From: Eutreptiella sp. 'Long Island Sound 2002'
Taxonomy: Eukaryota > Protista > Euglenida
Reading direction: 5' to 3'
Assembly: GCA_964036045.1 (NCBI GenBank)
Contig: OZ038379.1
Span: 32,736,001-32,800,000 of the forward strand
Length of the DNA stretch: 64,000 bases
Made by a program: the position numbers and the translations under genes. The notes under the pieces are model-generated. The model saw nothing but the letters and a program-made list of their open reading frames with translations, searched no databases and had not been told where the DNA came from. Positions 900 to 47,184 of this stretch are shown here, in pieces; position 1 is the first letter of the stretch; each line of letters starts with the position of its first letter.

Positions 900-1700
900 G
901 CCTGAATTATCGAAGGGCAGGGGGGTAAAGGAGATGCTCAAGGCCATAAGAATGGCGAGGGGTTTGAAGGCTACGGCAAACACACAGGCCACAGGAAGAG
1001 CGGTGGTAATCCTGAAAAACTCGGCAAAGCGCAGCATGATTTTGAGCTGTAGGAAACAAAATCACGCCAGTGGAGTTGAGCCCAAAGGATTCCGTTTACC
1101 ATAAGTGGAGAAAATACGTGACCGCTTAGTTTTTGAGAACAAGCAGTCGAGGTGGTGGATGTGTAAGTTAGATCTGAGTAACTACTAGAGCATCCGCCTG
1201 CCAGCCCAGTGGAGGAACAGTTTTCAAGTGTATGTGCCTGGGAAGGGGGGTGGGGGAGAGATGGACCAGGCTGCCCTTTGGATGGTCTTTCAGTTCGGTG
1301 GTGTGCCAGAAATTGGTCTTAGGTATTGTGCATTGTGTGTTAGCCCGGCTGCAGACTGATGGTTTTGTGTATTTAGACAATATCTTGCTGATTGCTAGGA
1401 GGTCACAAGTGAAGCGAGGTGCACGTTGCGTCGCCCAGAAATTGCGTCGGGCAGGATGCCTAATCAGTCCCAAGTCAGTGTGAGAGCCGACGCAACGGCT
1501 AGATTTTATTGGGAAATGGTTTGATACAGAGAAAGGGAGTGTGGGGAACAGACAGGACACACTTGGTATGTGGATGCAGCAAAATCCAGGCATGGATACG
1601 TGGCGGCAACATGGGTACCCAAAGTGGGCTGCTGCATCTCCCTCCCCCCTCAGTGGGTAAACTCCCAACAAACAGCATAGCTGATGGCCATTGTTAATGA
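900..1700 (+). mobile_element. Degenerate reverse transcriptase of a tyrosine-recombinase (DIRS/Ngaro/TATE-like) retrotransposon
   Basis: Joining ORFs 424-1104 and 1232-1483 through stops gives ILSCRKQN..PKGFRLP, KLDLSNY, WTRLPFGWSFS, VYLDNILL, LISPKSV and LDFIG, i.e. RT motifs in order with YxDD degraded to YLDN. Several in-frame stops. Confidence 0.7.
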
Positions 1701-1949
1701 AGCAAAGCTGGCTGAGGATTGCAGTCAATGCATTGGGTTGGCAATTTCAGACAGGCCGCAGCACAACAACACATGGCAAATATCTACAGGGAGCTGGGAG
1801 CCCAGTTCGGACAGCACTAGGGAAGCGCGGGGGAAGGGAACCAACCCTCGGGGGAAATGCACATGTATTAGTTCAGGGTCCTGGTGCAAACATTTTACCA
1901 AATCATGTCTGATGACTGGACCGACGGACACCTTTGACAAATTGTTTCA

Positions 1950-3400
1950 GGGCAGACTTGCACGTTCTTTTGAACCTTCCCGCCACCGCCCTAGCTGCCT
2001 GCTAGAGAAACATGACCAAACCGCCACCATTGCAGGGGCACTTAATGAGGGCGTGTGAGTTTTCGCAAACAGAAAGAGGGGAAGGTCGTTGGCAGCCATT
2101 GGGATGGCCGGATTATGGCTCGTCGAGAAGTTGGAACTACCCCCCCCCCCCCAGTAGTATGGGACACTATTGGCCCATAGCCTGCCCCCCCGCCCTCCCA
2201 TTTGGAAGCCCTGTTGCGTGGGCCCTTGTCCTGCTTGCATTGGGTTCATCGGGGCATGGCCATTCCTTGCTGTGCTTGTCCCACGGCTTGCTGAGCTGCC
2301 TGTCCGTTCATCTTGCAAAAATGTTCCCAGTGCATTCCCCTGAGAACTCGCAGGGGGCTGATAGGGCCCCTTGCATGTCAAAAGCCACCCCTTTCTGAGA
2401 GACGAACATTTGCGTTTGACCTACCATTTGTACCCTTCCTCCCCTCCTCACCCCACCCGCCTAGCGGTTTGCTGCGCAGTGGCCGGGTCCTCCACACTTG
2501 AAGCAGTTTCCGGGGGGTCGGTGGGTGACTGTTAGCATAACTTGTCCAGGCTGTTGTACTGGTACGTAGTGCTGTCGGCCTCCCCACCCCTGATTTCCCC
2601 GTGGTGCCGAAGAGTTTTTGCCTTGCCATTATGCCCTGAACTCTTTGTTGATGACGTTCAGGTCACTTGGGCCAGCTCGTGCTCCGTCCAGCTTTGGTCT
2701 CTCTACGCAAATTCTCGGAGTACCACCAGTAGGTTGGACATCTAGGCGTACAGTAGCTGTTCTCCCATTATGGGATTTAGTGAGTCTACTGTAAGACCCA
2801 GCACCAGGCTCTGCCTTAGCGCTTCGCTCTCCACTCTCGCGGCAGTCAATCTGGCAATGAGCTCATGGAAAGCCGCTGGCTGCTAACCACTCATACCCAC
2901 CACGTTGTTTGTGTCCGTTCCTTTTGCTTGCTACGCTTCTGCCGTCTGGTTATTGTCCGCTCTCCACTGCACGAAACACCCTTTGACGAGGTTTGCTTGG
3001 AGTCCCTTCCACTTTCTGTAGACCGCCAGCGCTCTGAGGAGGTCCTCCTTTGATAGGTCCACTCCTGATATCACTTCCAACGCCTCGAGTGCACCATCTG
3101 GTATCTCCTATTCGGCAATGTCCTCTTCTTGGCTCAGTGTCATCTCGGCTATGTTATCAGTGTGTCCGCTTTTCCCATGAAGGATCTGAACGGCCCTTTC
3201 ACCCATCTGGCCCATGCCGCAACTCATGGGTCTCTTGTGTCTCCTTCCGCTGCATCTGCTGGCCTTTTTCTGTTGCCCTACTTTTGATCCTGCTTGCCTT
3301 GCCGTTGTCCGTTATTTTGGTCATCCACAGTTGGGTCCATATCCATGTTAGGCATTACAGGAGAGAGAGAAACAAAAACTCCATGAGTCTACACCGGAAC
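1950..3400 (-). mobile_element. Decayed gag-like region with degenerate CCHC zinc knuckle (LTR-retrotransposon-like remnant)
   Basis: Minus-strand reading near 2480-2510 gives CFKCGGPGHCAANR (last Cys lost). An upstream frame gives AFHELIARLTAARVESEALRQSLVLGL. Stops and frameshifts throughout. Confidence 0.4.
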
Positions 3401-3419
3401 AGGGCACACTTGACTTAAA

Positions 3420-5030
3420 CTTTAGTTTACTGGCACAAACAGGGGTTGTGCAATATACACAGTGCTCCCATTGGCGCATCGGACATAAGCTGTATTCTGG
3501 TCAGAATCATGGCAGCGTAACCACGATTCCAAGGCACAGGCATCAGTGGAATCAGTATCCTTTGGTGTCCGGTGCATCTTCGACAAAATCATCTTCCTTG
3601 TCCAACACAAGTGGGACACCTCAGGGCTTCAAAAGGGTGGCACCGCTTTGGAGTAGAGACTCCAAGATGCACCGCGCAGATGAGCCAATATGCGGGTGTA
3701 GCTCAAGGGTGGCGGTGGCACGTGCTGTGCCCCTTTCCCAAACCATTTTGAGATCAACACTTTGCACACTACAGTCTGCCGTGTATTGGAACAAAGTCAA
3801 GCGATCTGTGGTGTAGCGCTGATGTTACTTTCGCCAATCTGGATGTGCCTACAAAATGTCTTAGATGTCCAGAATGGCCTGCAAGCGGTCGCACAGTTGC
3901 AATACATCGACATTGCGGCAGCGGTTTAGGGTGTGGGATATGGACAACAAGTTCTCCGCAAGCGGCAACCCGATTTGGCATGTGTACAAATTTGCGGTGC
4001 GGTCGCCCTTGCATTACTTTTAGAGTAATGAAGAGGGTTTGAAAGGTCATTTGCAACCGCAAATAATGGCTTTCGGGTACGAAGTCCTTGGTGTATTTAT
4101 TGAATCCACGCAACATCAATTGATGGCCCGTAGACAAATTTTCCATTCCAACATACAAACTCAGCTTTGGGTCAAAGTACCGTGACATCAAAAAGTCAAA
4201 AACCTGCCCCGTCAACCGCACGTCCGGGATGGCTGCGCACAACACCAGTGACCAATCGCGCCCACCGAGGCTACAAGCAGCATCACCTATCCTTTTGAAC
4301 AATTGCAAGAATGCATCTGCCAGCGGCACACATCCTTGTCCTTCGGATTGCCAACCCGGTCTAAGATCGGACACCGAAACACATGTGCCATGGAGTGAAC
4401 TGTTGCCACCGTAATGCGCAGTCCTGACTCTAGTTGGAATCCATGGTTCAATGCATGCGAGCGGGTGTTTTTAAAGAGATGTGGCAGGTAAAAAAAAATC
4501 CCACCCCAACAAGCAACAAGACAATCAACACCGGGGAAGTCCAGTGTTTGTGATACTTGCAAGCTACCATGGTGCGCGGCAGCCCGTCGGGCATTACCGT
4601 CCGTGCTTGGTGACAATTAGTCCCCGCGGTCACATAGCTCACTAGATTGGGCCCATGTTGTGTAGGTGTGCTGGAGCATGTGTTGCATGTCCTGCCAAGC
4701 AAACATATTACACGAGTCATACATCAAGAAGGGTATGCCGCTATGGACCTCACATTGCATGGGGACAATGAGCCACACGGCACGTACCGATGCCCGTTGA
4801 ATGGTACCATCCTCTACGTGTTGCCGAAAAGCAAGTAAATCACCTTCGCTCTGTATTTCGAGAACTCCCCCATGGTCCATGCAAAACTCATATAGCAACG
4901 GGGAAGCACCCGCAACCATTGATGGCACAATACCCCCCTCAACTGCAGCAACTCGTCGTGCAACATTGGAATGTGTAGACAAGTTGTACAAACCATGCAA
5001 AGTAAACGACACAAACAGATGCACTTAGAG
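3420..5030 (-). pseudogene. Decayed protein-coding remnant, probably transposon-derived, unassigned
   Basis: Protein-like ORFs 3769-4374 and 4617-5024 on one strand, Cys-containing and broken by stops. Abuts a tandem repeat array at 5090. Confidence 0.3.
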
Positions 5031-5560: not shown

Positions 5561-5699
5561 AGGCTGCATTCGGGACAAGGACAAAATTGTGGTTATGCGG
5601 CCCAAAAGAATATCACACAAAAAATTCTATTGCCTTTGACAAGGCACCTCGAAGAGGGGAGAGGGAGGACCAAGGCTGGATAAGTGCATAAGCGGTTTG

Positions 5700-6180
5700 T
5701 GCCCCAACCCCTTGGGAGCCCCCCCCCCCCCCCCCCAAATGCCCAAATAGGGTGAAAAACACATAAAGAGGGGCTAAAACATGCTTTACATAGGATATTT
5801 GATCATTTTGGATGGTCACAGTATCGGAAAAATCAGTTTCGGAAATTTCCATTTTTGAGCTGCCGAGGCTGGAAAACTGCAAAAGCAGGTTGTGCCCCAG
5901 CCCCCTTGGGAGCCCCCCCCCCCCCCCCCCAACACTCAAATAGGGTGAAAAACACACAAAGAGGGGCTACAATATGCTTTACATAGGATATATGATCATT
6001 TTGGATGGTAAAAATATGGAAAAAATCAGTTTCAGAAATTTCCAGTTTTGAGCTGCCAAGGCTAGAAAACCGCATGAGCAGGTTGTGCCCCTGCCCCCTT
6101 GGGAGCCCCCATCCCCCCCGAACACCCAAATAGGGCGAAAAACAAACAAAGAGGGTCTAAAACATGCTTTACATAGCATA
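5700..6180. repeat. About 195-bp tandem repeat, roughly 2.5 copies
   Basis: ccccttgggagccccc...aaatagggtgaaaaacac..aaagaggggcta..atgctttacatag recurs at about 5708, 5902 and 6096. Confidence 0.8.
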
Positions 6181-6339
6181 TTTCATCTTTGTGAGTGGTC
6201 AAAATATCAAAAGAATGTTGCAAAAATTTCTATTTTTGACCTATAGAGGGTGCTTGTTTGTGCCGTTTGTGCACACACCAAAGGCCATTCAACCACCGAC
6301 GAACAACAATTTTGAAGCTTTTGAGGGGCCCGTGGCTCG

Positions 6340-6700
6340 GGCTAGATGGTCCCAGTGGCCACTACGTGGGTCCCCATGGGTGCTCAAGTATCCGTATTGT
6401 CACCAAATGATCACCCAAACCCATCCTCGGGGCAACGGAAGGGCTTTGGAATGAGTCGAAATGTGAAAAGTTTTCAAGTGTCACTAAACAGCCTGCGCAA
6501 CAGCAACTGCGAGGTGATTTTGGGGCTTTTGGAGGGCCCATGGCACTAGCTATACAAACCTAGCAGCCACCATGTGGGTCCCCATGCGTGCTCAAGCACC
6601 CATATTGTCACCAAATGATCATCCAAACCCATCCTAGGGGCAACGGAAGGTATTCATGACAACTCCAATTTCAAAAAACTTTCACGTGCCACTAAACAGC
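6340..6700. repeat. About 210-bp tandem duplication
   Basis: gtgggtccc..tgctcaag..ccgtattgtcaccaaatgatca.ccaaacccatcct.ggggcaacggaagg is present at about 6366 and 6574. Confidence 0.75.
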
Positions 6701-7639
6701 CTACCCAGAGTTCAAACGGCTAAGCCCTCACTGCCAAGGGGCTATATGGGGGGGGGGGAGGGGGGCGACTGGGGATTCCTGGAATTGGGACCCGGGACCC
6801 CCGCCATGGGTTAGGGGGTTCATACACAGGAAAAAAAATCTTCAGGACCCAGGTCCAAATACAAACACAGTGGCCACAATACGCAAATAAGTTATGACCC
6901 CCCCCCACCACCCCCCACCCCCCTCTCAAAAAAGGGGTACCTAGGTGCGGGAAGGGGGGGGTACGGGGGTAAAAATCCAAACAATCATCGGGGGATCATT
7001 TTTGGTCCTAAAATGATGATTTTACAAGGGGTTAGACATCAGAAACCATACATTGGGGTATGCGAGTTGAGCAACCCCAAAAAAGGGGGGTATACGACGC
7101 TTGCGCTTGCGCTTGATCTAACAACCCCTCTTCGAGGTGATTTCGCACAAGTGGTGTGCTTGCATCGAAAAACACCCTTAAAACCCCCCCACGGACCATT
7201 TAAAAAGGGGGGGGGGTTTCCGAAACCCCTCATGGCATCGGATTTCTGAGACCCCCCGCCCCCCTGCCAATAGATTTGTATAGCACTGCCGGTGTCTAGT
7301 GCCGTGTCTTCTATGACCTGTTTGTTGGTTAACATGAGACCGGTGTGTGTGTGGGGGGGGGGGGGGGTCGTGGGTAATAGCGGAATGCATATCCCACTGC
7401 TAATGATTGCGGGCATTGCCATGCCAGTGCTCATTGGCATGGTTCACATTAACGGGGCGTGGGGCGGCATATCACACAAGAATTGCTAGGCCAAGTTTTT
7501 GTTCAAAAATTGCATGTGCATTGTGCACTGAAACACCCTCAGGCCACCTCTGAAAAACACTGTGACACGGCAAGGCAGCTAGGCCAATACGATAGACATT
7601 GAACCACTGCCAACCTGGTACTTTGATGTACCCATGAAC

Positions 7640-8150
7640 ATCTCATGTAGAGTACATCTATGCACTGGCATGCAACCAACACATATGTTTAAGTGGCAAT
7701 TACCACACTCTCATATCTCATTTGGACCTTGGCCGCACAATTGGCAACAAACACCATCGTCATTCTCCTCCTCTTCCTCAGTAGCTTTGTCTCGTGTCAA
7801 CACATACATGAGGCCAAGTTCCATAGGGCTGATACCTAGTCTACTAGTAGATAGAAAATTGAGTACCATGAAGCAAAATGCGAACATGATTGTGCAAATG
7901 GTGCAAATAGTGCAAATAGTGAGCCTGCCCACACATGTCAGAAAGCTCAGGAGAGCCTGCCCACACATTTCGCACAATCCTCCGGTGCCACAAGCGAGCA
8001 AAGAGGTGCTCCATCCTTGCATGATAAAAGCCATGCACATCAATATATGCTTGTTGGGCTTCCGTCAAAATCTTCCGCCCCATATACTGTACAACAATGT
8101 GCATTTGTACCCATTTTCATCCACAGCCACAATTCGGCAAGGGTGATGTC
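7640..8150 (-). pseudogene. Decayed coding remnant with acidic tract and Cys-rich PHD-like segment (transposon-like)
   Basis: EEEEENDDGVCCQLCGQGPNEI*ECGNCHLNIC..C; upstream frame IDVHGFYHARMEHLFARLW. Frameshifted. Confidence 0.3.
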
Positions 8151-30472: not shown

Positions 30473-31455
30473 GTTTTGAATTGTACAGCCACTTTAATGT
30501 CCGGACAGGGAGACAGCCCTCAATCAGAGTGAAGTGTAAATACAAACGTGCTTGGCTCTCCCTAGCACTATGTGAGGGGTGTAGCCATGGAGGAACCTCG
30601 GAACTCGCCCTGTCGTGGATGGGTAGGGTTGAAGAGAGCGAGGTTGCCTTGGCACGCGCCCGTTTGGGTGCCTGGTTGGTTGCATAGAGAAGTGGAGGCG
30701 TGACAGGAGAGAATCAGGATCAAGGGGAGGAACGGAGGCGCTGTGATGTGAGACGTGATGGTGTGGATAAAATCAGCCAAGGCTTACTGAATTGTTGGAA
30801 CAAGTCGGTAACTACTGTGAAGTGTGCAGGCAGACATAGAGAAGGATCTCGGGGGGGACCGGTGTAAAATGCATATTGGTCTATGTGAACAATTATTTTC
30901 GAAGGACGACAGTCGAGTAGTATTCTGGGGGGGGGGGGATCTGGATCCAGTTCTGACAACACTGATAACGCTTGTGGTGGCCTTACCGTAGTAATGGCGC
31001 GGTCGCCGTCTCCAAACTCGACCGGTGAGAGATGTGTGTACGTCGCGGAAGGAAGGAGCTCGCAGAGATGACCAAGTGGTTGGTAGTCGGAACCGCTGTG
31101 TGCAATGGATCAGGGCCTCACAAACTGACTTCAGTGTTCGAAGGGATTGGAAAGGGTCTCCCAGGGTGCATTATCAGGTTGTCCGCATGCAACGCCAAGA
31201 CAAACGCCGATTGCGGGTGGGCTTGGTGCACTGGAGTGCTGCAGACATTTAGACGAGGTACCACAGGATTTCAGGGGACGGCTCGCGGGGTTCAGGTACC
31301 CAGAACAAGCAATAGTAGTATCCAAGACATTCAGGTTCATACCACCAGTGGATGCCGAGGTACCACATGATAGCAATGGATAGGGAAAAGGCTGAGAAGT
31401 GGGATGAGTGACTGAAGGGGTAGGGGCCTCGTTCGTTCGGCTAGGGTTCAATCTG

Positions 31456-34400
31456 TTATTGGCCGAGATGAAACCGCTTGCTGGGGGGGGGGGGGGGTAG
31501 GGCAAGCGATGGGGGGGGGGGCGGAAAAGATTCCGTCGCTGATCTCGCTGACGGGGGCGGCTTGGCTGGAGGTAGAGGGGGGACTGGAGCTCGGAAGAAG
31601 TCAGTAATCCGTCGGTTGGAGCTGTCAGCGCCGGGGGGTTGGGGGGGTGCCACTGGTTTAGGGGCGTAAGTGTCACTTCGACTTTTGCGTGGTGGGGGGT
31701 CTTCAGTGTCCCGGTCGCGTTTCGTGGGTGGTCGTTTGGGATGCATGGGCCTTTTGCTTTTGTGGGTGCGTGGCTTTTTTGAGGGGGGGGATTGGACTGA
31801 GTCTGGCAGGTGGTCCGGGGGCAAGGGATAGTGGTATTCGCTGTGCGCCCGTGGGGTGTGTGACGTGCTGTAGATGCTGTTTGGTTTGCCCCAGGTGTTG
31901 GGACCTTGGGGGGGGGGGGGGCGCGGGAGGGGGGGGGGGGGATCTTCGGCTAGCCAAGTGAGTGCTTTGGACAGAGCGTCTTTCAACTTTCGCTGGCGCT
32001 GGGGGAGTGCATTTTTAAAAGACAAGACGCGCCGGGGTTTGGTTTCGCCTGTTGTGGGTGTAATCATGGCTTCGTACAGGGTGGAGGGCACCAGGAGCTT
32101 GACGAAGTTTCGTTTGTCTCCTGGGTGGGAGCACTGGGCCCACCAGATGCTTGCTACTTGGCTGAAAGGCGGAGGCCACGCATGTATGAAGCTTTGCACA
32201 ATGTGGTCAGCGCTAGGGCAGTGGGATAGGAAGGAGGCTGCATCGAGGGGGTGTGGTTGTGAGCATTTGTGACATATTCGAGGAGTTAGGTCGTTGTGGA
32301 ATGCATAAGTAAGGAAATTCATGTTGCCAGACGACCATTTGAAGGGGAGTCCAGAGAACCACGATGAGTGGTTGTAGAAGAAAAAACTGGACGGCACGTG
32401 AATGTTGTGGTGGTGATGGCGGGGGATGAGGGCCCTCGATACAGAGGTGGTTAGGCGGTGGCAGACAGGCAAGCTACCGGAGGATACAGTTCCCAAGGGG
32501 GGTGGGGGTTGCAACTCAGGGGAGGATGATGAACTATATGCAATCCACTTGGAGAATAGATCACAACATTCATTTCCCTGAAATCCCGCGTGCCCTTTGA
32601 TCCATGCGAATTGCGTTGACACGAATCTTGGCATCTGAGCTTGGAGGGAGGAGTAAGCCTTAACCCATGTGCCATGTGATGAGCGCGATGCCATCACCTA
32701 TGATTGAGTGTTTGCAGTGCGGATTACTTGTTCGTTGTCGCCTAGAATTATGCATTGCATAGGTTGGTTTAGGGAGGACACCCACCGAAGAAGCATAATG
32801 CCAGCCCAGTACTCGGACCCTTCAGAGGAATAATAGGGGGATGGGAGGCAAAGAACCAGAACCGTACCGTTGGGGTTGTAGATGGTGGCAGCAGAGCCGA
32901 AACCCCCTTGCTACGCCGAACCATCCAGGTATACCCAGGTTGTTTCGGAGGAGGCCTCTTGCAGGAGTTGGGCTGCTCAGTTGCAGTTCCACGCTTTGAG
33001 GTCATCAGCTCGGAGAGAGTGCGGGGGTAGGCCGTGGATTTGGTACAAATATCCCATTGGTGAGGCTTGGAGCAGGACCCCGTTCAAGGGGGGGGGGGGG
33101 TGTTGTCACGTAGGGGGGGGCAGGCGTTGTAGGAAGGGATTAAGAGATGGTGGTTCCCGAGGATGTTGGTGGGCGCGGCTATGACTGGGGGGTGGATGGT
33201 GTAGACTTTTTCTGACCCCCGGAGGTTGAAGGTTGTGTCATCCCCCGGGAAGTAGATGGCTGCTTGGTCGCAAGAGGTGTCAGTCACGATGCCTCTGTGG
33301 ATGCCCAGGTCTGTGTTTTGGTGGCGTTGCTTGTTGCCCCACTTGGTAACTCGGTTGCTGGAGTAAGTGGTGAAATGGACATAGGCGTGTTCACATTTTT
33401 GGAGCAGGTGGGGTGGAGTGTTAATTTCAGAGCTTGTGGTGTTGAATCTTACGTGGAGGCTGTGACAGGCATCGCTGATCAGCTTGAGGACCATTGAGTT
33501 TTCCGCGCCAAGTGCTGCTTGCCGAAAAATTTGGTTGGTTTCGTCCGGAGCCTCGTTGTTCAAGTAGCGGATGGCAAAATTGACAGTAGAGATATTGAGG
33601 CAGTGTTGGAAGTGGCGCAAGTCAAGTCCACCATGGGGCCTGGAAGTGTATTTGTCTTTGTTAGACACTAATCTGGAGATGCGGTTGCGTTTTTCTGGAT
33701 CATGGTCAATGGCAATGTTTTTCCAAATGATGTTTTGCAGGGATTTGAGCTGTGATTGATCGAGTGGGTGAGCCATGAGGCGATATTGGAGAGTGGGGAT
33801 TAGCTGGAGGTTCACCAGTCGGATATATTTAGAAAGGGTGAGGTTGAGTGGATGTAAGAAAGTGAAAAAAGACGTGATTTCAGATTTAGCCAGTTCATAT
33901 GTGAGAATGGGGTCGGGATCTGTAAACAGGTAAACACCGAGGTATTTGTATACCTTCCGGGGAGCGAGGGTTTTTGGGTCGATGGTTGATAACCTCTTTC
34001 GAGAAGGTGCAGTGATCGTGGTTTGAGGGGCCTTTCCCATGCTGTGGAGTTCTGCTTTGCTGAGGTTGATGTCTAGACCCCATGCCCGGCCCTTGGAGTC
34101 ATAGAAAGACAGGATCTCTTCAATGCGTTGGGAAGATTCGGAGCGGTACAGCAGGTCATCCACAAACGCATGGCTAGATTCATGTTGTGTGATGGGAGTG
34201 GACAGGTGGTGAGGGACAGCGAATAGTAAAACATTCACGTACAATACGAACAGGATCGGAGATAAGGGACATCCTTGGCGGACGCCTCTGGTTTGCAGGT
34301 GTGATGCACTGGTGTGGCCGTTAACTACAAGGTAGTCCCGTGGAGCTCGGTAGAGCCCAAGGATGAGTCGGATGAGGGGGGAGGGGAGGCGGTAGTGTTC

Positions 34401-36555
34401 CAGGGTCTTAAACAGGGACCCGTGAGGGACACTGTTGAAGACTTTGTTGAAATCTATGTAGAGGCTCTATGAAGCTGGGCAGTTTTGGTATTTGGCCAAT
34501 AGTTGAAAAATGTGATCTGAGCACCGGCGGTTGGGAAGGCCGCCGAACTGAGTTTTGTGGATCAAGCCATAAAACGAGGAAATTTCGTATAGGTGTTTGG
34601 CAGCGTGAGTGGCCACAATTTTGTAAAGCGTGTTAAGGAGGGCGATTGGTCTGTAGTTCACCGGGTCGTGTGTTGGGCCTTTTTTGTAAAGCAAAACCAC
34701 GTTAGCTTCCAACCACGCATCACGCATATCGTTGGTAAGGTGGAGGTCGCAGACAGAGAGCAGAAATCGTTTCACTGGTTCGGGAGAGATATGGAAAAGG
34801 TAACCATTCGTGGAGTCTCGGCCACCTGCCTTCGAAGGTTTGCAGGAGTGCAGGTAGGAAGTGAACCCGTGCCATGAGATTTCCGGCGTAGGGGTGATGG
34901 CTGTGGTGGGGGGGCACTGGGGTGTATGCCGGAGGAGTTCTTCGGCAGTGTTTACACTAGGTTCGTAGTTTAGGGGTCCGCCCAGAGTGAGTAGGGTGTC
35001 AGAAAAAATTTCGGTGAGGCGTTTGGTGTCACTTGTTAATTTGCCTGTGTTTGGGTCTTTCAATGTGGATGTTCGATGCTCCGTTGGGTTTGCCGCTTCG
35101 TTGAGTGTTTTCTTGATGTTGGTTTTTTGGATGAGGCACTTGTGAATCTTTGACCTTTTAGATTTGTTGTAAGTGTCATCCCATTGGTGGATTGCATCAT
35201 TCAATTGTGCCATTCGGGTAGAAAATTGCGGGTGCGTTGGGGGGGGGGGGCATCGTTTAATGCCTGGCGAATGGATTTGATGGCTAGGGAGTCGGGTTTA
35301 ATGCAGGGGGCTGTGGTGTTGTGGTAGTGAGCGCTGAGCTCCCGAATGACCATGGAGGTGTATTTTTGGACCGTAGCAAGGGGGGGTGTTTTTGATGAGA
35401 GGGGTAAATGATTGGCACCACTCAGACATTTCTTGTAGGGCACCGTTGAAAGTGCTGATCTCAGACTTGTTGAGTTTTCTGAAAACGCGTTTGGTAATTG
35501 TAGATGGGTGGAAAGGGGTGGGGGGGATAGAAAGGGTGCACGAGGAGGGATGGTGGTCAGTAGCGCGGTTTTCTGAATGAATGCTTGCTTCCAAGAGGGA
35601 TATCTTCCCTAGTGAGGTCGGGGAAATGAAAATGTAGTCTGGTCTGGACGAGCTGGTGCGGTGTCCTTGTGGATACCTGGTGTACTCCCGTGCCGTAGGG
35701 TTCGCCAGACGGAAGGTGTCGCGTAGTAGGGGTGGGGTGGCCGTGGCTGAGTGTCTGATCCATGGCCAATGATTGTCATTCAGTAACCCCTGGCTGTCCA
35801 AGGCGGGGTTGATCAGACAATTGAAGTCACCCCCCAACAGGAAGTTTGGAAATTGCTTGAGGAGTGGGCGTAAGCTGGTTTCCACTTTCCTTCTCCATAC
35901 CTCGCCCGCAGGCGCGTACACAGAGGCGACTAGGAGAGGTGGTGAACCGGGCAGAGTGAGGAGGGCAGCTGTGATGAGACCATCTTTGTCGGGGTTATCG
36001 CAAGGGGTGACGAACTGGCTCAGGAGGGGTGAGAAGGCTAAACCGGAACCGTGTTCGTGGTGGGGGGATAAGTTTGAGAAAACCACAGCTCGGTGACCTT
36101 TTTGGTTGTAAATGTGAGGCACGAGGGGTTTTTTCCTGAGTTCTTGAAGGAAAACAATGTCGAAGCCTTGTTTGAAATGTTGTAAAAGAAGGGGGGTCGA
36201 AGGTTTCTTTTCTGTATTGTGGGTGATGGCACGGATGGTGTGGATTAGGCTTTTGGGTGATGGCTTCGCCGGAGCGTAGCCTTTTTTCAGTTTCGGATGT
36301 CACCGGAGGGGGGGAGGGGATTCTGGGGTTGGAGGGTGGCTCCATTCGAGAAACATTTGAATTATGTGTTGGACGTACGGAAACAATCGGGGAGGTGTTG
36401 GGCTCAAGGTCGGTCGCCGTGAGGTGTGTGAGGTCTGAGGGTGAGGGAGGGGAAGGGAAAAAAGGCACGGTGTTCATGTGGGACTCCACGAGGGTCGAAG
36501 CGGACGGGGCTGCTATGCCAGCCCCGATGAGCACGTCCTTTAGACTTTTAACCAT
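31456..36555 (-). pseudogene. LINE ORF2: AP endonuclease, reverse transcriptase, RNase H, Cys/His motif, Pro-rich tail
   Basis: APE: IRAITHN..DIVFLQE, ASVYAP, LLGGDFN, RPDYIF, TDHHP. RT: KAGGRD, NYRPIALLN, YIDFNK, GVRQGCPLSP, AFVDDL, YKYLG. RNase H: VYLDGS, GDNEQV, WIKGHAGFQGNECCD. C-terminal CHKCSQPH..SHC. Stop at 34467-34469, further stops near 32700-33000, frameshifts at G/C runs near 36310, 35380, 35240 and 33090. Confidence 0.93.
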
Positions 36556-38617
36556 GGCATTTGCAATGGCGCAAGATCATGGCGTATCGGAGAACTCGTT
36601 GCGTGTATTGGCCATTTCTTTCATCCATGGTAGTTTTGGGAATTGCATGCAAGTATGACCAGCGGGCTTCTCCCCGTAGACATGTGAGCGAACCGGAGCC
36701 CATCCAGTGGGCGTAGTGATGTCCTCCTTTCACATGGCGAAAATGCATGGGGACAGGACATTTGAGGTTCAAGTCTAGCACATATTTGCCCAACGCTTCG
36801 GCGTCCACATGATCTCCTAAGACTGAACCAGGCTCGTAGCGGGCGACAGTCACTTGGTTTGGAGCATCGATAGAAATACTGCGGGAGGCCAATTGAAGCA
36901 GAATTTTTTCAATGTAAGGCTCGAATTCGGGTGGTAGGTCTTCCAACCGTGTGATATCGGTGCCATTAGCTCCCATTCCATAGCCAAAGTGCTTCGGATG
37001 TCGATGCATAGAGGTGTCCCAATTTGGTTGGAGGTGTTCGAACATAGTAATGAGACTGTCTTCTTCCTCAGCAGTGAAGAGAGCTGGAATATAGTCGAGA
37101 CCGTCGGGAACTTTGTTAGAGGCGAAATGCGCAGGGGGCATTTTGTAGGAAACTTCGGGGTTCACTTCGGGCGGAGGATCGTGGTCGACATCGATGGTGT
37201 CGATTTTCTCGGCTTTCTCTTCCGGCGGGGGGTCTTGATCTACATTGATAGCTTCGGCGAAATTTGGATCCTTTCGGAAGTCTGCGGTGGCTTTGTCCTC
37301 AACGTCGTTATTCACTATTGGGCTGTATGGGTTGTGGACGTGTGCTTCGAGTATAGGAGTGAGGAGTTGTTGGTCATCCGTGTCCACGTCGGCCGGAGGG
37401 TGCACCTCTGGCGAAGGCGATGGGTGGTCGTTATTAGGCGGTGATGGACTGGATGTGGTTGGATGGGGAGTGCTTGAGGTTGAATCGGAGTTGTCGGGTG
37501 CCGTATCTCCTGAAGGATGGAAGAGGGGTGGTGAAGGGGAGAAGGCCGTAGAGGTGTTAGCGTGTGATGGTGTCTTAGGCGTGTTGTCTTCCGTGTTCCA
37601 TTGGGATATTTTGTCACGCGGGGTCGGAGGTGGCGCGTCCAATTTTTCTTGGAGTTCCATGAGCTGGGTGACAAAGGCGCCGGCACCAAGGGTTCCTCCA
37701 CATTGGAAAACAGCGATAAGGTCGTTGGGGTGTTCTTCGTCGGTGTGCGGTTTGAGGATTTTTTCCCGAGAGACATGGTCCGGTTCGAGGCAGCGTGCAG
37801 ATATTCCTCGGTAACTGAAGCCATGTGCCAATAGAGCAGAGTCCCTCTTTTGGTATTTGAGTTGGTATAGAGTGGCTACGTTAGACGACGTGATCACCTT
37901 GTCAATTGAGTAGAAGGGCCCTAGCAAACCCATAACTATTTTGACCGAATGAAGAGACTCAGTCATCGGTGCGGCAACTTCAACTAAGCATGGGTCACTC
38001 GGCGTGCGGACTGGATCTTTAGGAAGAGGCCATTTGTCTTGAGGAAGAGCCGTGGACGCGAGGGAGGCTGATTGAGGTTTTTCATCCCGAAAGGGAACCA
38101 TGGCTCCCGCCGGTCCTTTGAATAACAAGAATCCATCGTCACGGAACAACCTTGTTGCTAGAGTTTGAAGCGGGGTTTTTTGAGGTTCGCATGGCACCGC
38201 CGAGTAGTCTAGGGTGACCAGCAAACTCGTTGAGTTTTTTAAGAGAGCTCCTTCGTACATGCAGCAGCGAGGGTGGGCCGCAAAGTTCCGCCTTGTGATA
38301 GACCAAATATCACCCGCTTTGTCGTCGGGGTTGCGAGATTTGCAATCACGAGAGGGTACAACGTGGAAGGTTCGTAGACTTTGGAGATCCTCAATACGCA
38401 TGATGAAAATGTCTCCTTTGGCAAACACCGGGGAGTTGACCACCGCATTGCGCAAGTAGGTGTTGAAGGGTGGTGGGAGATCCCAATCATACCTCACAAA
38501 ACCTTCAAGAGGAGAGCGGAAATTGCGGATTCCCCCTAGTGGGTAGAAAGCATTGGATGAGTTGATGCTAGCCGCGTCACTCAAACCGCCGAAGCCTCGA
38601 TTGAAACCCGTTTGCAT
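36548..38617 (-). CDS. LINE ORF1 (689 aa): possible RRM-like region, Pro/acidic linker, C-terminal AlkB-family 2OG-Fe(II) dioxygenase (about 36560-37110)
   Basis: YIPALFTAEEEDSL, HFGY, PNQVTVARYEPGSVLGDHVD (HxD), LRGEARWSYLHAI (second His), RYAMILRH (Rx5R). Open frame. Confidence 0.88.
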   Translation of the reverse strand: MQTGFNRGFGGLSDAASINSSNAFYPLGGIRNFRSPLEGFVRYDWDLPPPFNTYLRNAVVNSPVFAKGDIFIMRIEDLQSLRTFHVVPSRDCKSRNPDDKAGDIWSITRRNFAAHPRCCMYEGALLKNSTSLLVTLDYSAVPCEPQKTPLQTLATRLFRDDGFLLFKGPAGAMVPFRDEKPQSASLASTALPQDKWPLPKDPVRTPSDPCLVEVAAPMTESLHSVKIVMGLLGPFYSIDKVITSSNVATLYQLKYQKRDSALLAHGFSYRGISARCLEPDHVSREKILKPHTDEEHPNDLIAVFQCGGTLGAGAFVTQLMELQEKLDAPPPTPRDKISQWNTEDNTPKTPSHANTSTAFSPSPPLFHPSGDTAPDNSDSTSSTPHPTTSSPSPPNNDHPSPSPEVHPPADVDTDDQQLLTPILEAHVHNPYSPIVNNDVEDKATADFRKDPNFAEAINVDQDPPPEEKAEKIDTIDVDHDPPPEVNPEVSYKMPPAHFASNKVPDGLDYIPALFTAEEEDSLITMFEHLQPNWDTSMHRHPKHFGYGMGANGTDITRLEDLPPEFEPYIEKILLQLASRSISIDAPNQVTVARYEPGSVLGDHVDAEALGKYVLDLNLKCPVPMHFRHVKGGHHYAHWMGSGSLTCLRGEARWSYLHAIPKTTMDERNGQYTQRVLRYAMILRHCKCHG

Positions 38618-39543
38618 GATTCTATTGTCCGTGAGCGAGAAGTCTCCGTGAATTTGGGGTTTAGAACTTTGGATTCTTCATAGAAAGCGCGTAGGGTCTT
38701 GATGGAGACGTCAATTCGAACCTTAGAGTTGACCGTGTTGGGTGGTTTGGTGATGCGGGCATGTTGGAAGGCTTCGAAGAGAGATGGTTCGTAGAGGTTG
38801 ACATCAAAGAATTGAATTTCATCCGTTTTGCTTTTACGGCTATCAAGCCATAAGGCCACGACGGGGAGAGATTGTTCGTTTGTTTCGACGAAGTTGGGTG
38901 TGTTGTTCCTTACCAAAGCAAATTGGTTTTTGGTCTCTTTGAAAACGTGGATCTCGGCGATGAAATCTTTTATTTGAACGAGAGAACCATTCATTGTGGG
39001 GAGATAGGACTTGGATGTGACCTCCCTATCGTAGCTCGTAGTGATGAACCATCCACGGGTTGCAGTGCTCGGTGAAGCAAAGCGGCTCTTTAAGAATTCT
39101 ACGTAGTGTTTGGAAGTTTTCACCACTGGTGGCAACCCCGTTTTGTCCATGGGAGGTGCGAGGTAGAACGCGACCTTGGGCATGTACTCGTCTTTGTGCA
39201 AGAACAAGTCGTGGGCGGGCGATAGGTAGGTGTGTTGGTTTCGTTTGTTGATATCTTTGTTGATGAAGGCGTTGGTGAAGTCGGTGCCTCTTAGATCTCA
39301 GTCAAACGGGTGTCTATTGTAGATGAATTGGCGTATGTTGGAGTGTGCAATGAAGAGTTTTGAGTCAAACATGCGAGTACCTTCTTCGTAGGTGCCGAAT
39401 TTGACGTAGTCATTTTCCGAGGACGTTTTTGGTGTAGCTAGGAGTTGAGCGGCGCCATAGGTGAGTCCTTTTGGGATTGGAAAAGGGGACGGCGGCGGGA
39501 TGGTTGGGACTTTGTTTTTTGAGCCGAGACCAAAGAACGACAT
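38581..39543 (-). pseudogene. LINE ORF0, about 320 codons, unknown function, one in-frame TGA at 39298-39300
   Basis: ORFs 39298-39858 and 38581-39207 are in the same frame. The first ATG downstream of the SL gives MSFFGLGSK at 39543. Confidence 0.65.
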
Positions 39544-39786
39544 GTTGTGCGCTGAACGATGGATGTCCGGAGTTCGGGAATGGGATGCCAAAGCGTAGGA
39601 AGTGACGGTAAACACGGAGTTTGTCCAATATAGAAATAGCAGAAATGACGGTAATTTCGAAGGAAATGACCGTGAATTCGAAAGGACTTGGAAATCGGCC
39701 CAGAACTTGAACAGCCCAGGATTTTTGTAAATCACCGAATAGCCTGGACTATTGGTGGATCCATCAAAGGAATTCTGAGGGTCAAT

Positions 39787-39812
39787 CAAAAAAAAATGGA
39801 CACTCAGAAAGT
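39787..39812 (-). other. Retroposed spliced-leader exon sequence
   Basis: Minus strand ACTTTCTGAGTGTCCATTTTTTTTTG versus the Euglena SL as I recall it, ACTTTCTGAGTGTCTATTTTTTTTCG: 24/26, both mismatches C/T. It is not followed by a GT donor, so it is not an SL RNA gene. Confidence 0.88.
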
Positions 39813-40699
39813 GATTTTGTGTGCACAACCTTGGATGTGCACCGCCTTGAGTATGCACGGCCTTGTATGTGGACTGCGCGCCTCGTCAGCGCCAGCCCCC
39901 TCCCGCTCTGTGCACCTCGTTAGCGCCGAACCGCCCCCAGCATGCCTCGTTCGCAAACCCCCCCGTCGCGCGTCTCGTTAGCGCCAACCCCCCCCCCCCC
40001 CAGCCGTGCGCCTGGTTACCGCCAAATTCCCCCCCCCATGCGCCTCGTTCGCCCCAACCCCTCCCCCCCACCCGTGCGCCTCGTTAGCGCCAAACTCTTA
40101 GGCGGCTCTAAGTGAGTGGTCGGCCGAAACCCAAGTGAAAAATCACGGTTTTGAAAAGGGCCTTGTGGGGCATTGCATTTTGAAATGGTGGCTAAAACCC
40201 CTGCTTGGGGGAAGAATGTATTTTCAGACCTACGGGTCACAGCAAAATTTTACTATTCCACATCCACGCTTCACAGTGCAGTGAGGAAAACCCACCGTTG
40301 AACGCCCCCCCTCAGTGACATACCTGTGTGGTGTTTACAAACCACCATTCTGTATTGACGGCTTTATGATCAATGAAACCATCATCTATTGTGGAGCGCC
40401 TGTTTGGCACCACTCCAAACACTGGTGGTGTGTGGTTGCTTAGCAACCTATTAATCACCTAGAAATGAAAAATGCAGGGTACCGAGCAAACATAGGCAAG
40501 CAGTGGACAGTGCATAGTACGCTCATATAGGTAGGTATGCTCAAGCAGTTTTGTATTGGTGAACAGATAGGGTGCGGTAACAAAGACAATGAACTTTGTC
40601 AATGAGTACATATTGATGAACACGTAGTCAAACCTCACACTTGTTTGTACTTACTGAGAAATAACATGTAGCATTGTAAAAATGCAAATTCGCTCAACA

Positions 40700-43830: not shown

Positions 43831-44911
43831 CAATCCAAGCAGGGGCAATAGGGGGACGAGGAACCGGCAAAACTCAACAAGGCAGTGGTTCGACAGGCAT
43901 GGTGCTTATATTTTCCCACCTCCCCCCAAAAAGGGGGGGGGGGCTGATGCAGGCTGGTCTATTCATCATCTAAAGAAATGACATCTGCCCCCCCTCCAAA
44001 ACCAACACAGACGGCACAGATGGATCAATGGACACGGCAACTACAACAGGGGGTGCCTCAACATCGGAGGTTGCATCATCACCCTCGCATACGTGAGGAA
44101 TTCCTACAAGCTCATCTAGAAGGTCCGCAAAATTGTGTGCAGGAGGGGGAGGGGGGGCAAGTCGCGTGCAAGTGCATCCACGAGTGCGCTCTCAGGGCGG
44201 ATAGCCTCTGGCATGGCCATGTTCGTACCAACATAGCGTTGTGGTTGGCGTTGGCTCAAGATGGTGTCACCTGCGGTGCTATGGCCAGCCTGCTGTGCCA
44301 TCGACCGATGGGGGATGTGCTGTTGCAGTGCATCCATGCAGTCATGTGATATAGCAACATGTTTGACAAGGGTTTGCAATGTCCGTTGCAACAAGGCTTG
44401 CAAATGATCAATCGACATGTCATGGTACAAACTAATAGGAAACTGGGGGACTTTAGGCCAATCATCCATAACCTTAATAATCTTCATCTTTGACTTCCAC
44501 AACACTGGGGATACTAAGCAGTATGGGCCATGGCGTCGTGGGTGCGTTGGGGTTGCAGGCCCAGCACGTGCGGGGCGCCTGCCAGGATTGTGTATAAAGT
44601 CTGATGTCTGATGTCTGATAAGGGATGTTGTGTGTGCGGTCTGTCCAAGAAGATGTCTGATATTCTTATCTACTGGAGGTGGGTCTAGGGGTCCAATGCC
44701 TAGAGGAAATTGGGAGAAATTATGCCTAAATCTAAATCAACCCCCCCCCCCCCAAATGAAAAAAACAAAAAGGGAGGACACAATTGAAAAATCATTGGGG
44801 AACCACCTTCGACAATCAGAAACATGGCAGTACAGCAGCAAAAAAGACTTTGAACACCAAAATGGGAAAATGGGGAAAATTTGTGAGCAGGGAAAGGGGC
44901 AAAAAAAAAAA

Positions 44912-47184
44912 GGTGCCCATAGGCCCCCATAGGCCCCCATAGGCCCCCAAAGGTGCCCATAGGTCCCCTAAGGTGCCAATAGGTCCCCATAGGCCCGCAT
45001 AGGCCCGCATAGGCCCGCATAGGCCCCCAAAGGTGCCCAATGGGTCCCCAAAGGTGCCCATAGGTCCCCAAAGGTCCCCCTAGATGCCAATGAGTCCCCA
45101 TCGGCCCCCATAGGTCCCCATACGTCCCCAAAGGTGCCCATAGGTCCCCACAGGCCCCCATAGGCCTCCACAAGCCCCCATAGGTCCCCATAGGACCCCA
45201 TAGGCCCCCATAGGCCCCCAAAGGTGCCCATAGGCCCCCATAGGCCCCAAAAGGTCCCCATAGACCCCCAAAGGTCCCCATAGGCCCCCATAGGCCGCCA
45301 TAGGCCGCCATAGGCCCCCATAGGTCCCCATAGGTCCCCCTAGATGCCGATGAGTCCCCATCGGCTGCCATCCCCATAGGTCCCCAAAGGTTCCCAAAGG
45401 TGCCCAAAGGTCCCCATAGGCCCCCATAGGTCCGCATAGACCCCCATGGGTCCCCAAAGGTGCCCAAAGGTCCCCACAAGTCCCCAAACGTCCCCGTAGA
45501 CCCCCATAGGCCCCCATAGGTCCCCATAGACCCCCATAGGTCCCCATAGATGCCAATGAGTGCCCAAAAATCCCCAAAGGTCCCCAAAGGTCCCCATAGG
45601 CCCCCGTACGTCCCCAAAGGTGCCCAAAGGTCCCCAAAGGTCCCCATAGGCCCTCATAGGCCCCCATAGGCCCCCATAGGCCCCCATAGGCCCCCAAAGG
45701 TCCCCATAGGCCCCCATAGGTCCCCACAAGCCCCCATAGGCCGCCATAGGCCCCCATAGGCCCCCATAGGTCCCCCTAGATGCCAATGAGTCCCCATCGG
45801 CCCCCACCCCCATAGGTGCCCATAGGTCCCCAAAGGTGCCCATAGGTCCCCAAAGGTGCCCAAAGGTCCTCATAGGCCCCCAAAGGTCCCCGTAGACCCC
45901 CATAGGCCCCCATAGGTCCCCGTAGGTCCCCATAGACCCCCATAGGTCCCCATAGGCCCCCATAGGTCCCCATAGGCCCCCATAGGCCCCCATAGGCCCC
46001 CAAAAGTCCCCATAGGCCCCCATAGGTCCCCACAAGCCCCCATAGGTCCCCATAGGTCCCCATAGGTCCCCATAGGCCCCCATAGGCCCCCATAGACGCC
46101 CATAGGCCCCCATAGGCCCCCATAGGCCGCCATAGGTCCCCCTAGATGCCAATGAGTCCCCATTGGCCCCCATCCCCATAGGTCCCCATAGGCCCCCGTA
46201 GGTCCCCAAAGGTGCCCGTAGGTCCCCAAAGGTCCCCAGAGGCCACCATAGGCCCCCATAGGCCCCCAAAGGTCCCCATAGGTCCCCACAAGCCCCCATA
46301 GATCCCCATAGGTCCCCATAGACCCCCATAGGCCCCCATAGGTACCCACAAGCCCCCAAAGGTCCCCATAGGTCCCCATAGGCCCCCATAGGTCCCTATA
46401 GACCCCCATAGGCCCCCATAGGCCCCCATAGGCCGCCATAGGCCCCCATAGGTCCCCAAAGGTGCCCATAGGTCCCCATAGGTCCCCATCGGCCCCCATC
46501 CCCATAGGTCCCCAAAGGTGCCCACAGGTCCCCAAAGGTGCCCAAAGGTCCCCATAGGCCCCCATAGACCCCCATAGGCCCCCATAGGCCCCCATAGGTC
46601 CCCATAGGTCCACATAGACCCCCATAGGTCCCCAAAGGTGCCCATAGGTCCCCATAGGTCCCCACAAGCCCCCAAAGGTCCCCATAGGTCCACACAGGCC
46701 CCCATAGGTCCCCAAAGACCCCCATAGGCCCCCATAGACCCCCATAGGCCCCCATAGGTCCCCACAAGCCCCGCATAGGCCCCCATAGGTCCCCACAAGC
46801 CCCCAAAAGTCCCCATAGGTCCCCGTAGGCCCCCATAGGTCCCGGTGGACCCCTGTAGACCCCCATAGACCCCCATAGGCCCCCATAGACCCCCATAGAC
46901 CCCCATAGGCCCCCATAGGCCCCCATAGGTCCCCATAGGCCCCCATAGACCCCCATAGGCCCCCATAGGCCCCCATAGGCCGCCATAGACCCCCATAGGC
47001 CCCCAAAGGTCCCCATAGGCCCCCATAGACCCCCATAGGGCCCCATAGGCCCCCATAGGCCCCCATAGGTCCCGGTGGACCCCCATAGACCCCCATAGAC
47101 CCCCATAGGCCCCCATTGACCCCCATAGGCCCCCATAGACCCCCATAGGCCCCCATAGGCCCCCATAGGCCCCCATAGGCCCCC
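44912..47184. repeat. 10-bp satellite (CCCCCATAGG and variants), about 2.3 kb, with recurring marker units
   Basis: Direct reading. The marker tagatgcc(a/g)atgagt occurs at about 45081, 45341, 45548, 45778 and 46142. Confidence 0.95.

Follow-up and report, generated by a model that had tools for sequence, protein, structure and literature searches.

Why would a long interspersed nuclear element (LINE) carry an Fe(II)/2-oxoglutarate (2OG) dioxygenase on the protein made from its first open reading frame (ORF1), and is that domain a working part of the element or debris in a single copy? The question is raised by a 64,000-nucleotide stretch of the genome of the euglenid Eutreptiella sp. 'Long Island Sound 2002' (assembly GCA_964036045.1, contig OZ038379.1, forward-strand positions 32,736,001 to 32,800,000), called the window here, in which a LINE copy on the minus strand encodes an AlkB-type domain at the C-terminal end of its ORF1 protein (ORF1p). 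Judged by sequence and by a structural model, it is a true member of the AlkB family of Fe(II)/2OG dioxygenases, of the ALKBH8/ALKBH6-like branch, with a predicted activity. It recurs, in the same place, across a whole group of LINE lineages.

The domain lies in the C-terminal ~190 residues of a 689-amino-acid (689-aa) ORF, which matches PF13532 (2OG-FeII_Oxy_2) at E=6.2e-11 and 43.3 bits against a Pfam gathering cutoff of 31.2. The same threshold is passed at loci L031, L043, L044, and L046, and the three families F1 (that of the window copy), F1b, and F2 all score above gathering. Among solved structures, the best sequence match of the single domain is human ALKBH8 (3thp, E=4e-10), and the His-Val-Asp and later His of the ORF align with the His-Ile-Asp and distal His that bind iron in ALKBH8. 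All three motifs to which the original prediction had drawn attention (HxD, distal His, and Rx5R) can be read intact from the DNA, as follows:

36569 to 37099, minus strand: AlkB domain with a double-stranded beta-helix fold (from PF13532, the ALKBH8 sequence match, and the structural model with its Foldseek matches)
36803 to 36811, minus strand: HxD iron ligands, His-Val-Asp (read from the DNA and aligned with His-Ile-Asp of ALKBH8)
36647 to 36649, minus strand: distal His iron ligand (read from the DNA; ALKBH8 alignment)
36569 to 36589, minus strand: Rx5R 2OG-binding motif (Arg codons at 36589-36587 and 36571-36569)

The two arginines of the last motif (R208 and R214 in the numbering of a 220-aa C-terminal piece) are invariant among four families, and the Tyr of the NxY motif is invariant in the element domains.

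That prediction had also taken the domain to be AlkB-like rather than TET/JBP-like, and the distinction has held. A Pfam scan of the 689-aa ORF at E<=0.1 returned PF13532 alone, with no TET/JBP family; an NCBIfam scan of the AlkB domain gave no match. When the AlphaFold2 model of the 220-aa piece (pLDDT 69.7) was compared with the PDB, the best 50 Foldseek matches were all AlkB-family structures, and no TET/JBP entry was among them. ALKBH8 and ALKBH6 head this list, which also holds NMAD-1, ALKBH5, Ofd2, E. coli AlkB, ALKBH2, and ALKBH3 (probability 1.00; TM score 0.57 to 0.68 for ALKBH6, ALKBH8, NMAD-1, ALKBH5, and AlkB). On the strength of the Pfam and Foldseek results, we reject a TET/JBP identity. 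The model also matches viral AlkB domains in BFVD.

Which branch of the AlkB family is this? A four-family profile searched against solved structures found ALKBH8 at E=2.9e-20 and 75.9 bits, and all others at 35 bits or less. Weaker matches were to Ofd2 and ALKBH7 (1e-7), ALKBH6 (3e-5), and NMAD-1 (about 1e-2), and E. coli AlkB, ALKBH1, ALKBH2, ALKBH3, ALKBH5, and FTO had no match at E<=10. Because the profile matches rank ALKBH8 first and leave the classical erasers without a match, we place the domain, by sequence, on the ALKBH8/6/7/4 side of the family, outside the classical branches that repair 1-methyladenosine (m1A) and 3-methylcytidine (m3C) or erase N6-methyladenosine (m6A). The initial suggestion that the enzyme removes m1A, m3C, or m6A is possible but finds no support in these comparisons, in which the nearest solved relative is ALKBH8.

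Given the lead of ALKBH8 in bits, and its place with ALKBH6 at the head of the structural matches, one can envision that the domain does what ALKBH8 does, hydroxylating a base such as a modified uridine, in tRNA or in other RNA, and in this way tunes translation of the element or prepares RNA for retrotransposition. We regard this as unlikely. In a tree of 147 AlkB domains, all of the element-borne domains form one group (SH-aLRT 88-89). The true ALKBH8 proteins, with an RNA recognition motif (RRM) and a methyltransferase, make up a separate and well-supported clade; both partner domains are present in the ALKBH8-type proteins P0031 and P0059. By Pfam, the element ORF1 has neither an RRM nor a Trm9-like methyltransferase, PF13532 being its sole family, and the identity of the element domains to ALKBH8-type proteins is only ~28%. 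Orthology to ALKBH8 itself is rejected on the missing partner domains and on the position of the group outside the ALKBH8 clade.

The simplest reading of the element group, with moderate support, is one old acquisition followed by vertical descent inside the LINE clade. As to a host donor gene, a query of the genome with ALKBH8 gave 1,813 candidates, among which no host AlkB exon was distinguishable from the transposable element copies. At C3:19827347-19827724 there is an exon-like match to a Trm9/ALKBH8 methyltransferase (62% and 44% identity). Because no AlkB exon was scored near this methyltransferase exon, the host Trm9-type enzyme may lack an AlkB part.

Is the domain peculiar to the copy in the window? 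When the 220-aa piece was searched against the 2.28-Gb genome, 1,457 candidate places were found, of which 151 were scored, all at E<=1e-22; identity to the window piece is 83 to 94% in F1, 57 to 68% in the subfamily F1b, and ~35% in F2. At least six LINE lineages (F1, F1b, F2, and those in L051, L053, and L054) share one layout: an ORF1 N-terminal region, the AlkB domain, and an ORF2 with APE endonuclease and reverse transcriptase (RT). The last three lineages were taken from the ENA assembly ERZ25074135, where the same repeat families occur. F1 and F2 ORF1 proteins are homologous over their full length, with 28% identity in the ~640-aa N-terminal region (E=2e-70) and 36% in AlkB. Between lineages in general, identity is 23 to 28% in the ORF1 N-terminal region, 28 to 35% in AlkB, and 35 to 40% in ORF2; for the three lineages from the ENA assembly, the ranges are 28 to 41% in AlkB and 35 to 60% in ORF2. 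These comparisons indicate that the domain predates the split of at least six deeply diverged LINE lineages. The F2 copies L043, L044, L045, and L048 (C9, C7, C19, and C23) are 99.6 to 99.9% identical over ~7.2 kb, and their ORF1-AlkB frames are open; because they are near-identical with ORF1 open, F2 is probably active now or was so recently. L043 also has a 2.36-kb insertion at 5627-7990. In L042, positions 1100-3600 hold a long tandem repeat, open on both strands as ~282-aa repeating frames, which adjoins a truncated F1 copy.

Among 5.8 billion clustered proteins, none with this ORF1 was found other than records with the source label 'ena'; the six close protein matches whose contigs were examined (P0002, P0004, P0005, P0206) all come from ERZ25074135, and a metagenome scan with the ORF1 N-terminal region gave no match. 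Two long proteins with a C-terminal AlkB, P0017 and P0124, were considered and set aside: they are encoded on giant-virus-like contigs, where the domain is joined to a glycosyltransferase in one and an mRNA capping enzyme in the other, and they are not ORF1 proteins. On such contigs, L049 8001-11684 encodes a 1,227-aa glycosyltransferase with a C-terminal AlkB, and L050 2563-5805 encodes a 1,080-aa mRNA capping enzyme/guanine-N7 methyltransferase with a C-terminal AlkB.

The catalytic residues have been kept. Lineages just ~30% identical to one another still have in common the first and the distal His, the carboxylate, the conserved Tyr, and both members of the Arg pair. The metal-ligand carboxylate is HxD in F1, F1b, and L053 and HxE throughout the F2 group (alignment of L043, P0002, P0005, and P0008), and every one of the 11 sequences in a cross-lineage alignment has the distal His. 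In a set of 30 distinct F1 copies, the HxD residues are retained in 28 and 29, the distal His in 29, and the Rx5R arginines in 28 and 30, with the AlkB domain free of stops in 24.

Substitution patterns point in the same direction. The pairwise ratio of non-synonymous to synonymous change (dN/dS) of the AlkB domain among F1 copies is 0.29, in a set of copies picked by protein score or long open frames; along ORF1 it is 0.15 to 0.25 in the N-terminal region, 0.3 to 0.6 in a Pro-rich linker, and 0.18 to 0.29 in the AlkB domain. Between F1 and F1b, the proportion of changed non-synonymous sites (pN) is 0.19 and of synonymous sites (pS) 0.79, the latter saturated; F2 and its L051 relative give a pN of 0.31 and a pS of 0.85. 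A contrast less sensitive to the choice of intact copies is that between variants private to one copy and variants shared by at least two. Private variants comprise 218 non-synonymous changes and 6 stops against 86 synonymous changes, a ratio of 2.6, with a neutral expectation of 2.45 to 3.55; shared variants comprise 63 non-synonymous changes and 1 stop against 74 synonymous changes, a ratio of 0.86 (Fisher p=2e-7 for the contrast). Because shared variants are depleted in replacements and private ones stand at the neutral ratio, the domain appears to be under purifying selection in the replicating lineages and to decay neutrally after insertion.

These results also bear on the least attractive explanation, that the element has no use for the domain, which would be either a fragment captured from the host or a relic in neutral decay. 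The window copy is indeed dead, as such a relic would be. Set against this are the more than 1,400 genomic matches, the six lineages with one layout, a dN/dS of ~0.2 to 0.3, and the scarcity of replacements among shared variants, on which grounds both a one-off host fragment and a neutral relic are rejected; we give the idea almost no credence. Neutral decay across copies and a one-off host fragment were two of the outcomes that the original prediction had singled out as fatal to it. It has come through both: the domain is a family trait (1,457 candidates, one layout in six lineages), with a dN/dS of 0.29, ligands kept in 28 to 30 of 30 copies, and a Fisher p of 2e-7.

How, then, is the domain carried by the element? 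The remaining features of the window copy are listed here:

30474 to 39814, minus strand: LINE family F1 copy of ~9.3 kb, dead (blastn limits common to 12 other genomic copies)
39787 to 39812, minus strand: 26-nucleotide (26-nt) spliced-leader-like 5′ end, ACTTTCTGAGTGTCCATTTTTTTTTG (read from the sequence)
36548 to 39543, minus strand: remnant of ORF1, with its ATG at 39543-39541 and its TAA at 36550-36548 (aligned with the intact 1,032-aa ORF1 of L031)
36548 to 38617, minus strand: 689-aa ORF, the C-terminal two thirds of ORF1 (ORF listing; alignment to L031 ORF1)
37156 to 37260, minus strand: 105-nt repeat unit in the Pro-rich linker (copy alignments; joints in sequencing contigs)
36548 to 36555, minus strand: overlap of ORF1 stop and ORF2 start, ATGGTTAA, with the ORF2 ATG on the ORF1 TAA (read from the DNA)
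33084 to 36555, minus strand: ORF2 remnants in several frames (APE endonuclease at ~35298-36122; RT at 33084-35213)

We call the upstream frame a LINE ORF1, as it is the first ORF ahead of an ORF2 with APE and RT, in a layout common to many dispersed copies. Intact ORF1 is ~1,032 aa long, starts with MSFFGLGSK, and is open in L031, L032, L033, L034, and L037. It consists of a ~640-aa N-terminal region, the Pro-rich linker, and the C-terminal AlkB domain. The linker contains a 105-nt (35-aa) tandem repeat that varies in copy number; the window copy and L039, its nearest relative (96.5% identical), have one unit fewer than most copies. Compared with intact copies, ORF1 in the window is interrupted by a stop at codon 82 (39300-39298) and has lost 1 nt near 38657. 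The uninterrupted 689-aa ORF described at the outset is real, but it covers no more than the C-terminal two thirds of a ~1,030-aa ORF1, which these two lesions break farther upstream. ORF2 was correctly said to be broken: it is split into at least four frames, and its Pfam matches to APE and RT are weak, whereas intact homologues show clear APE and RT in ORF2. The window copy is dead in both ORFs, with its AlkB domain undamaged; four changes in that domain are private to this copy, of which three are replacements.

The 26 nt at the 5′ end of the element we take to be the Euglena spliced leader. Family F2 starts with the same leader (ACTTTCTGAGTGTCTATTTTTTTTCG at L045 2744-2769, plus strand), with 2 of the 26 bases not those of the window copy. 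Both F1 and F2 begin exactly at the spliced leader; therefore, full-length copies derive from trans-spliced mRNA. The overlap of the ORF1 stop with the ORF2 start suggests, as read from the DNA, coupled translation of both ORFs. Positions 39648-39860 of the window, covering the 5′ untranslated region and leader part, are covered by contigs, in three runs, to ~10 times the depth seen over the remainder of the element, and this part is probably shared with other repeat families. Elsewhere in the window, a 315-aa ORF at 44700-45647 on the minus strand consists of many repeats of a short GTYGGLWGPMG-type peptide, and probably reflects tandemly repeated DNA rather than a gene.

What might the enzyme do? 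We imagine that ORF1p, translated from the trans-spliced element mRNA, would bind element RNA, as is general for LINE ORF1 proteins, and that the tethered dioxygenase would then oxidize a modified base in whatever nucleic acid is bound, in all likelihood the element's own RNA. The target could be a lesion or methyl mark that gets in the way of reverse transcription or translation, or one by which the RNA is recognized for silencing; its removal would raise retrotransposition. We lean, if only modestly, toward this picture of an ORF1p-tethered enzyme acting on bound nucleic acid, most likely element RNA, for the benefit of retrotransposition. There is precedent for a retrotransposon AlkB acting on RNA, since an ALKBH5-like ORF of an orchid (Phalaenopsis) Ty3/Gypsy element demethylates m6A on RNA in vitro (PMC9289625).

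Several points weigh against this picture. The RNA binding on which it depends is an assumption for this protein: the 640-aa N-terminal region of ORF1 has no Pfam match even at E<=10, none by PDB profile search, and none in Atlas, and no RRM, coiled coil, or zinc knuckle is detectable in it. The AlphaFold2 model of this region is unusable (pLDDT 33); a beta-alpha-beta-beta-alpha-beta run at residues 520-585 is a hint at most. Within the catalytic domain, the Asn of the NxY motif (I-N-Q-Y in ALKBH8) is replaced by Ala (V-A-R-Y in F1 and V-A-D-Y in F2). ALKBH8, the closest match, is a tRNA wobble-uridine hydroxylase and not a demethylase, as cited in a passage of PMC8868631; our data fit hydroxylation of a modified base as well as they fit demethylation. 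No RNA run was found with the window stretch, and the four runs that contain it are contigs of unknown kind, uninformative on transcription. Finally, the way in which copies were chosen for dN/dS biases that estimate toward intact copies.

A different nucleic acid could be the substrate. The domain might clear the target site or the new cDNA of N6-methyladenine (6mA) or alkyl lesions, or counter host DNA marks at insertion. The top structural matches include NMAD-1, which demethylates 6mA in DNA. The Euglena gracilis genome is reported to have heavy 5-methylcytosine (5mC) and promoter 6mA, with DNA methyltransferases co-opted by retroelements (preprint 10.64898/2026.05.21.726589). The domain is, however, on ORF1p and not on the DNA-handling ORF2p, and removal of 5mC by an AlkB enzyme is not known. 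A DNA substrate therefore seems to us improbable, about as much so as an ALKBH8-like role.

More doubtful still is a protein substrate or a non-catalytic role, in which the domain would bind or serve as a scaffold in the ORF1p particle. Protein-directed or histone-binding roles have been reported for ALKBH4, ALKBH7, and Ofd2, and the replaced Asn of NxY also speaks for such a role. The metal and 2OG ligands, however, are strictly retained over deep divergence, which points to catalysis.

Oxidation of the element's own RNA by a tethered enzyme, the reading that we prefer, can be set beside other replicators that carry AlkB. The AlkB domains of plant RNA viruses have been reported to repair m1A and m3C in RNA. 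Those of Betaflexiviridae, Closteroviridae, and picorna-like viruses resemble the LINE domain in being embedded in a protein of an RNA-templated replicator and in their clear structural similarity; they differ in being fused within a replicase polyprotein rather than an ORF1 protein, and the sequence of the LINE domain matches a different AlkB branch. Human ALKBH8 (3thp/3tht) and ALKBH6 (7vjs) are the best sequence and structure matches, with aligned iron and 2OG ligands; unlike ALKBH8, the LINE domain has no RRM or methyltransferase partner, falls outside the ALKBH8 clade at ~28% identity, and has Ala for the NxY Asn.

Among LINEs, the closest parallel is with CR1-like elements, whose ORF1p can be of an esterase type or a PHD type. 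In both cases, the upstream ORF of an APE-RT LINE has acquired an added domain, and in the euglenid LINE the stop of this ORF overlaps the ORF2 start. The added domain here is an AlkB dioxygenase, and no RRM, coiled coil, or zinc knuckle was detected in the N-terminal part. The orchid Ty3/Gypsy case is similar in that its AlkB is retrotransposon encoded, has the HxD...H and Rx5R motifs intact, and is proposed to act on element RNA; it differs in belonging to a long terminal repeat (LTR) element, as a separate extra ORF that was recently acquired and is nested in plant ALKBH5 homologues (PMC9289625). The euglenid domain is in a non-LTR element, fused to the C terminus of ORF1p, old, spread over at least six lineages, and ALKBH8/6-like. 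A search of the available literature for AlkB in non-LTR elements, LINE ORF1, or Euglena repeats found no report. Previously known carriers of AlkB among selfish RNA-templated replicators are plant and picorna-like RNA viruses and a young lineage of orchid Ty3/Gypsy elements.

A broader proposal can be put forward tentatively, and we hold it with somewhat less than even confidence: that an old, still active euglenid LINE clade depends on an ORF1 dioxygenase to edit its own trans-spliced RNA, its cap, or its target. This would be the first self-encoded epitranscriptomic counter-defense in a LINE, its AlkB coming from another branch of the family and by a route independent of the plant virus and orchid Gypsy examples. 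One version of it, the clearing of cap-4-type base methylation, is without support, as the Euglena spliced leader gives a trimethylguanosine cap and not cap-4 (review, PMC3388326).

The AlkB domains of RNA viruses and of one orchid LTR element have been read as weapons against host RNA methylation. An AlkB fused to ORF1 in a LINE clade, where it exists in thousands of copies, carries that idea over to non-LTR retrotransposons and into a remote branch of the eukaryotes, and the affinity to ALKBH8 and ALKBH6 could indicate a substrate for a poorly understood branch of the AlkB family. The near-identical young copies with an open ORF1 are a natural, testable system for finding out what modification of RNA or DNA restrains retrotransposition where trans-splicing, heavy 5mC, 6mA, and base J occur in one genome.

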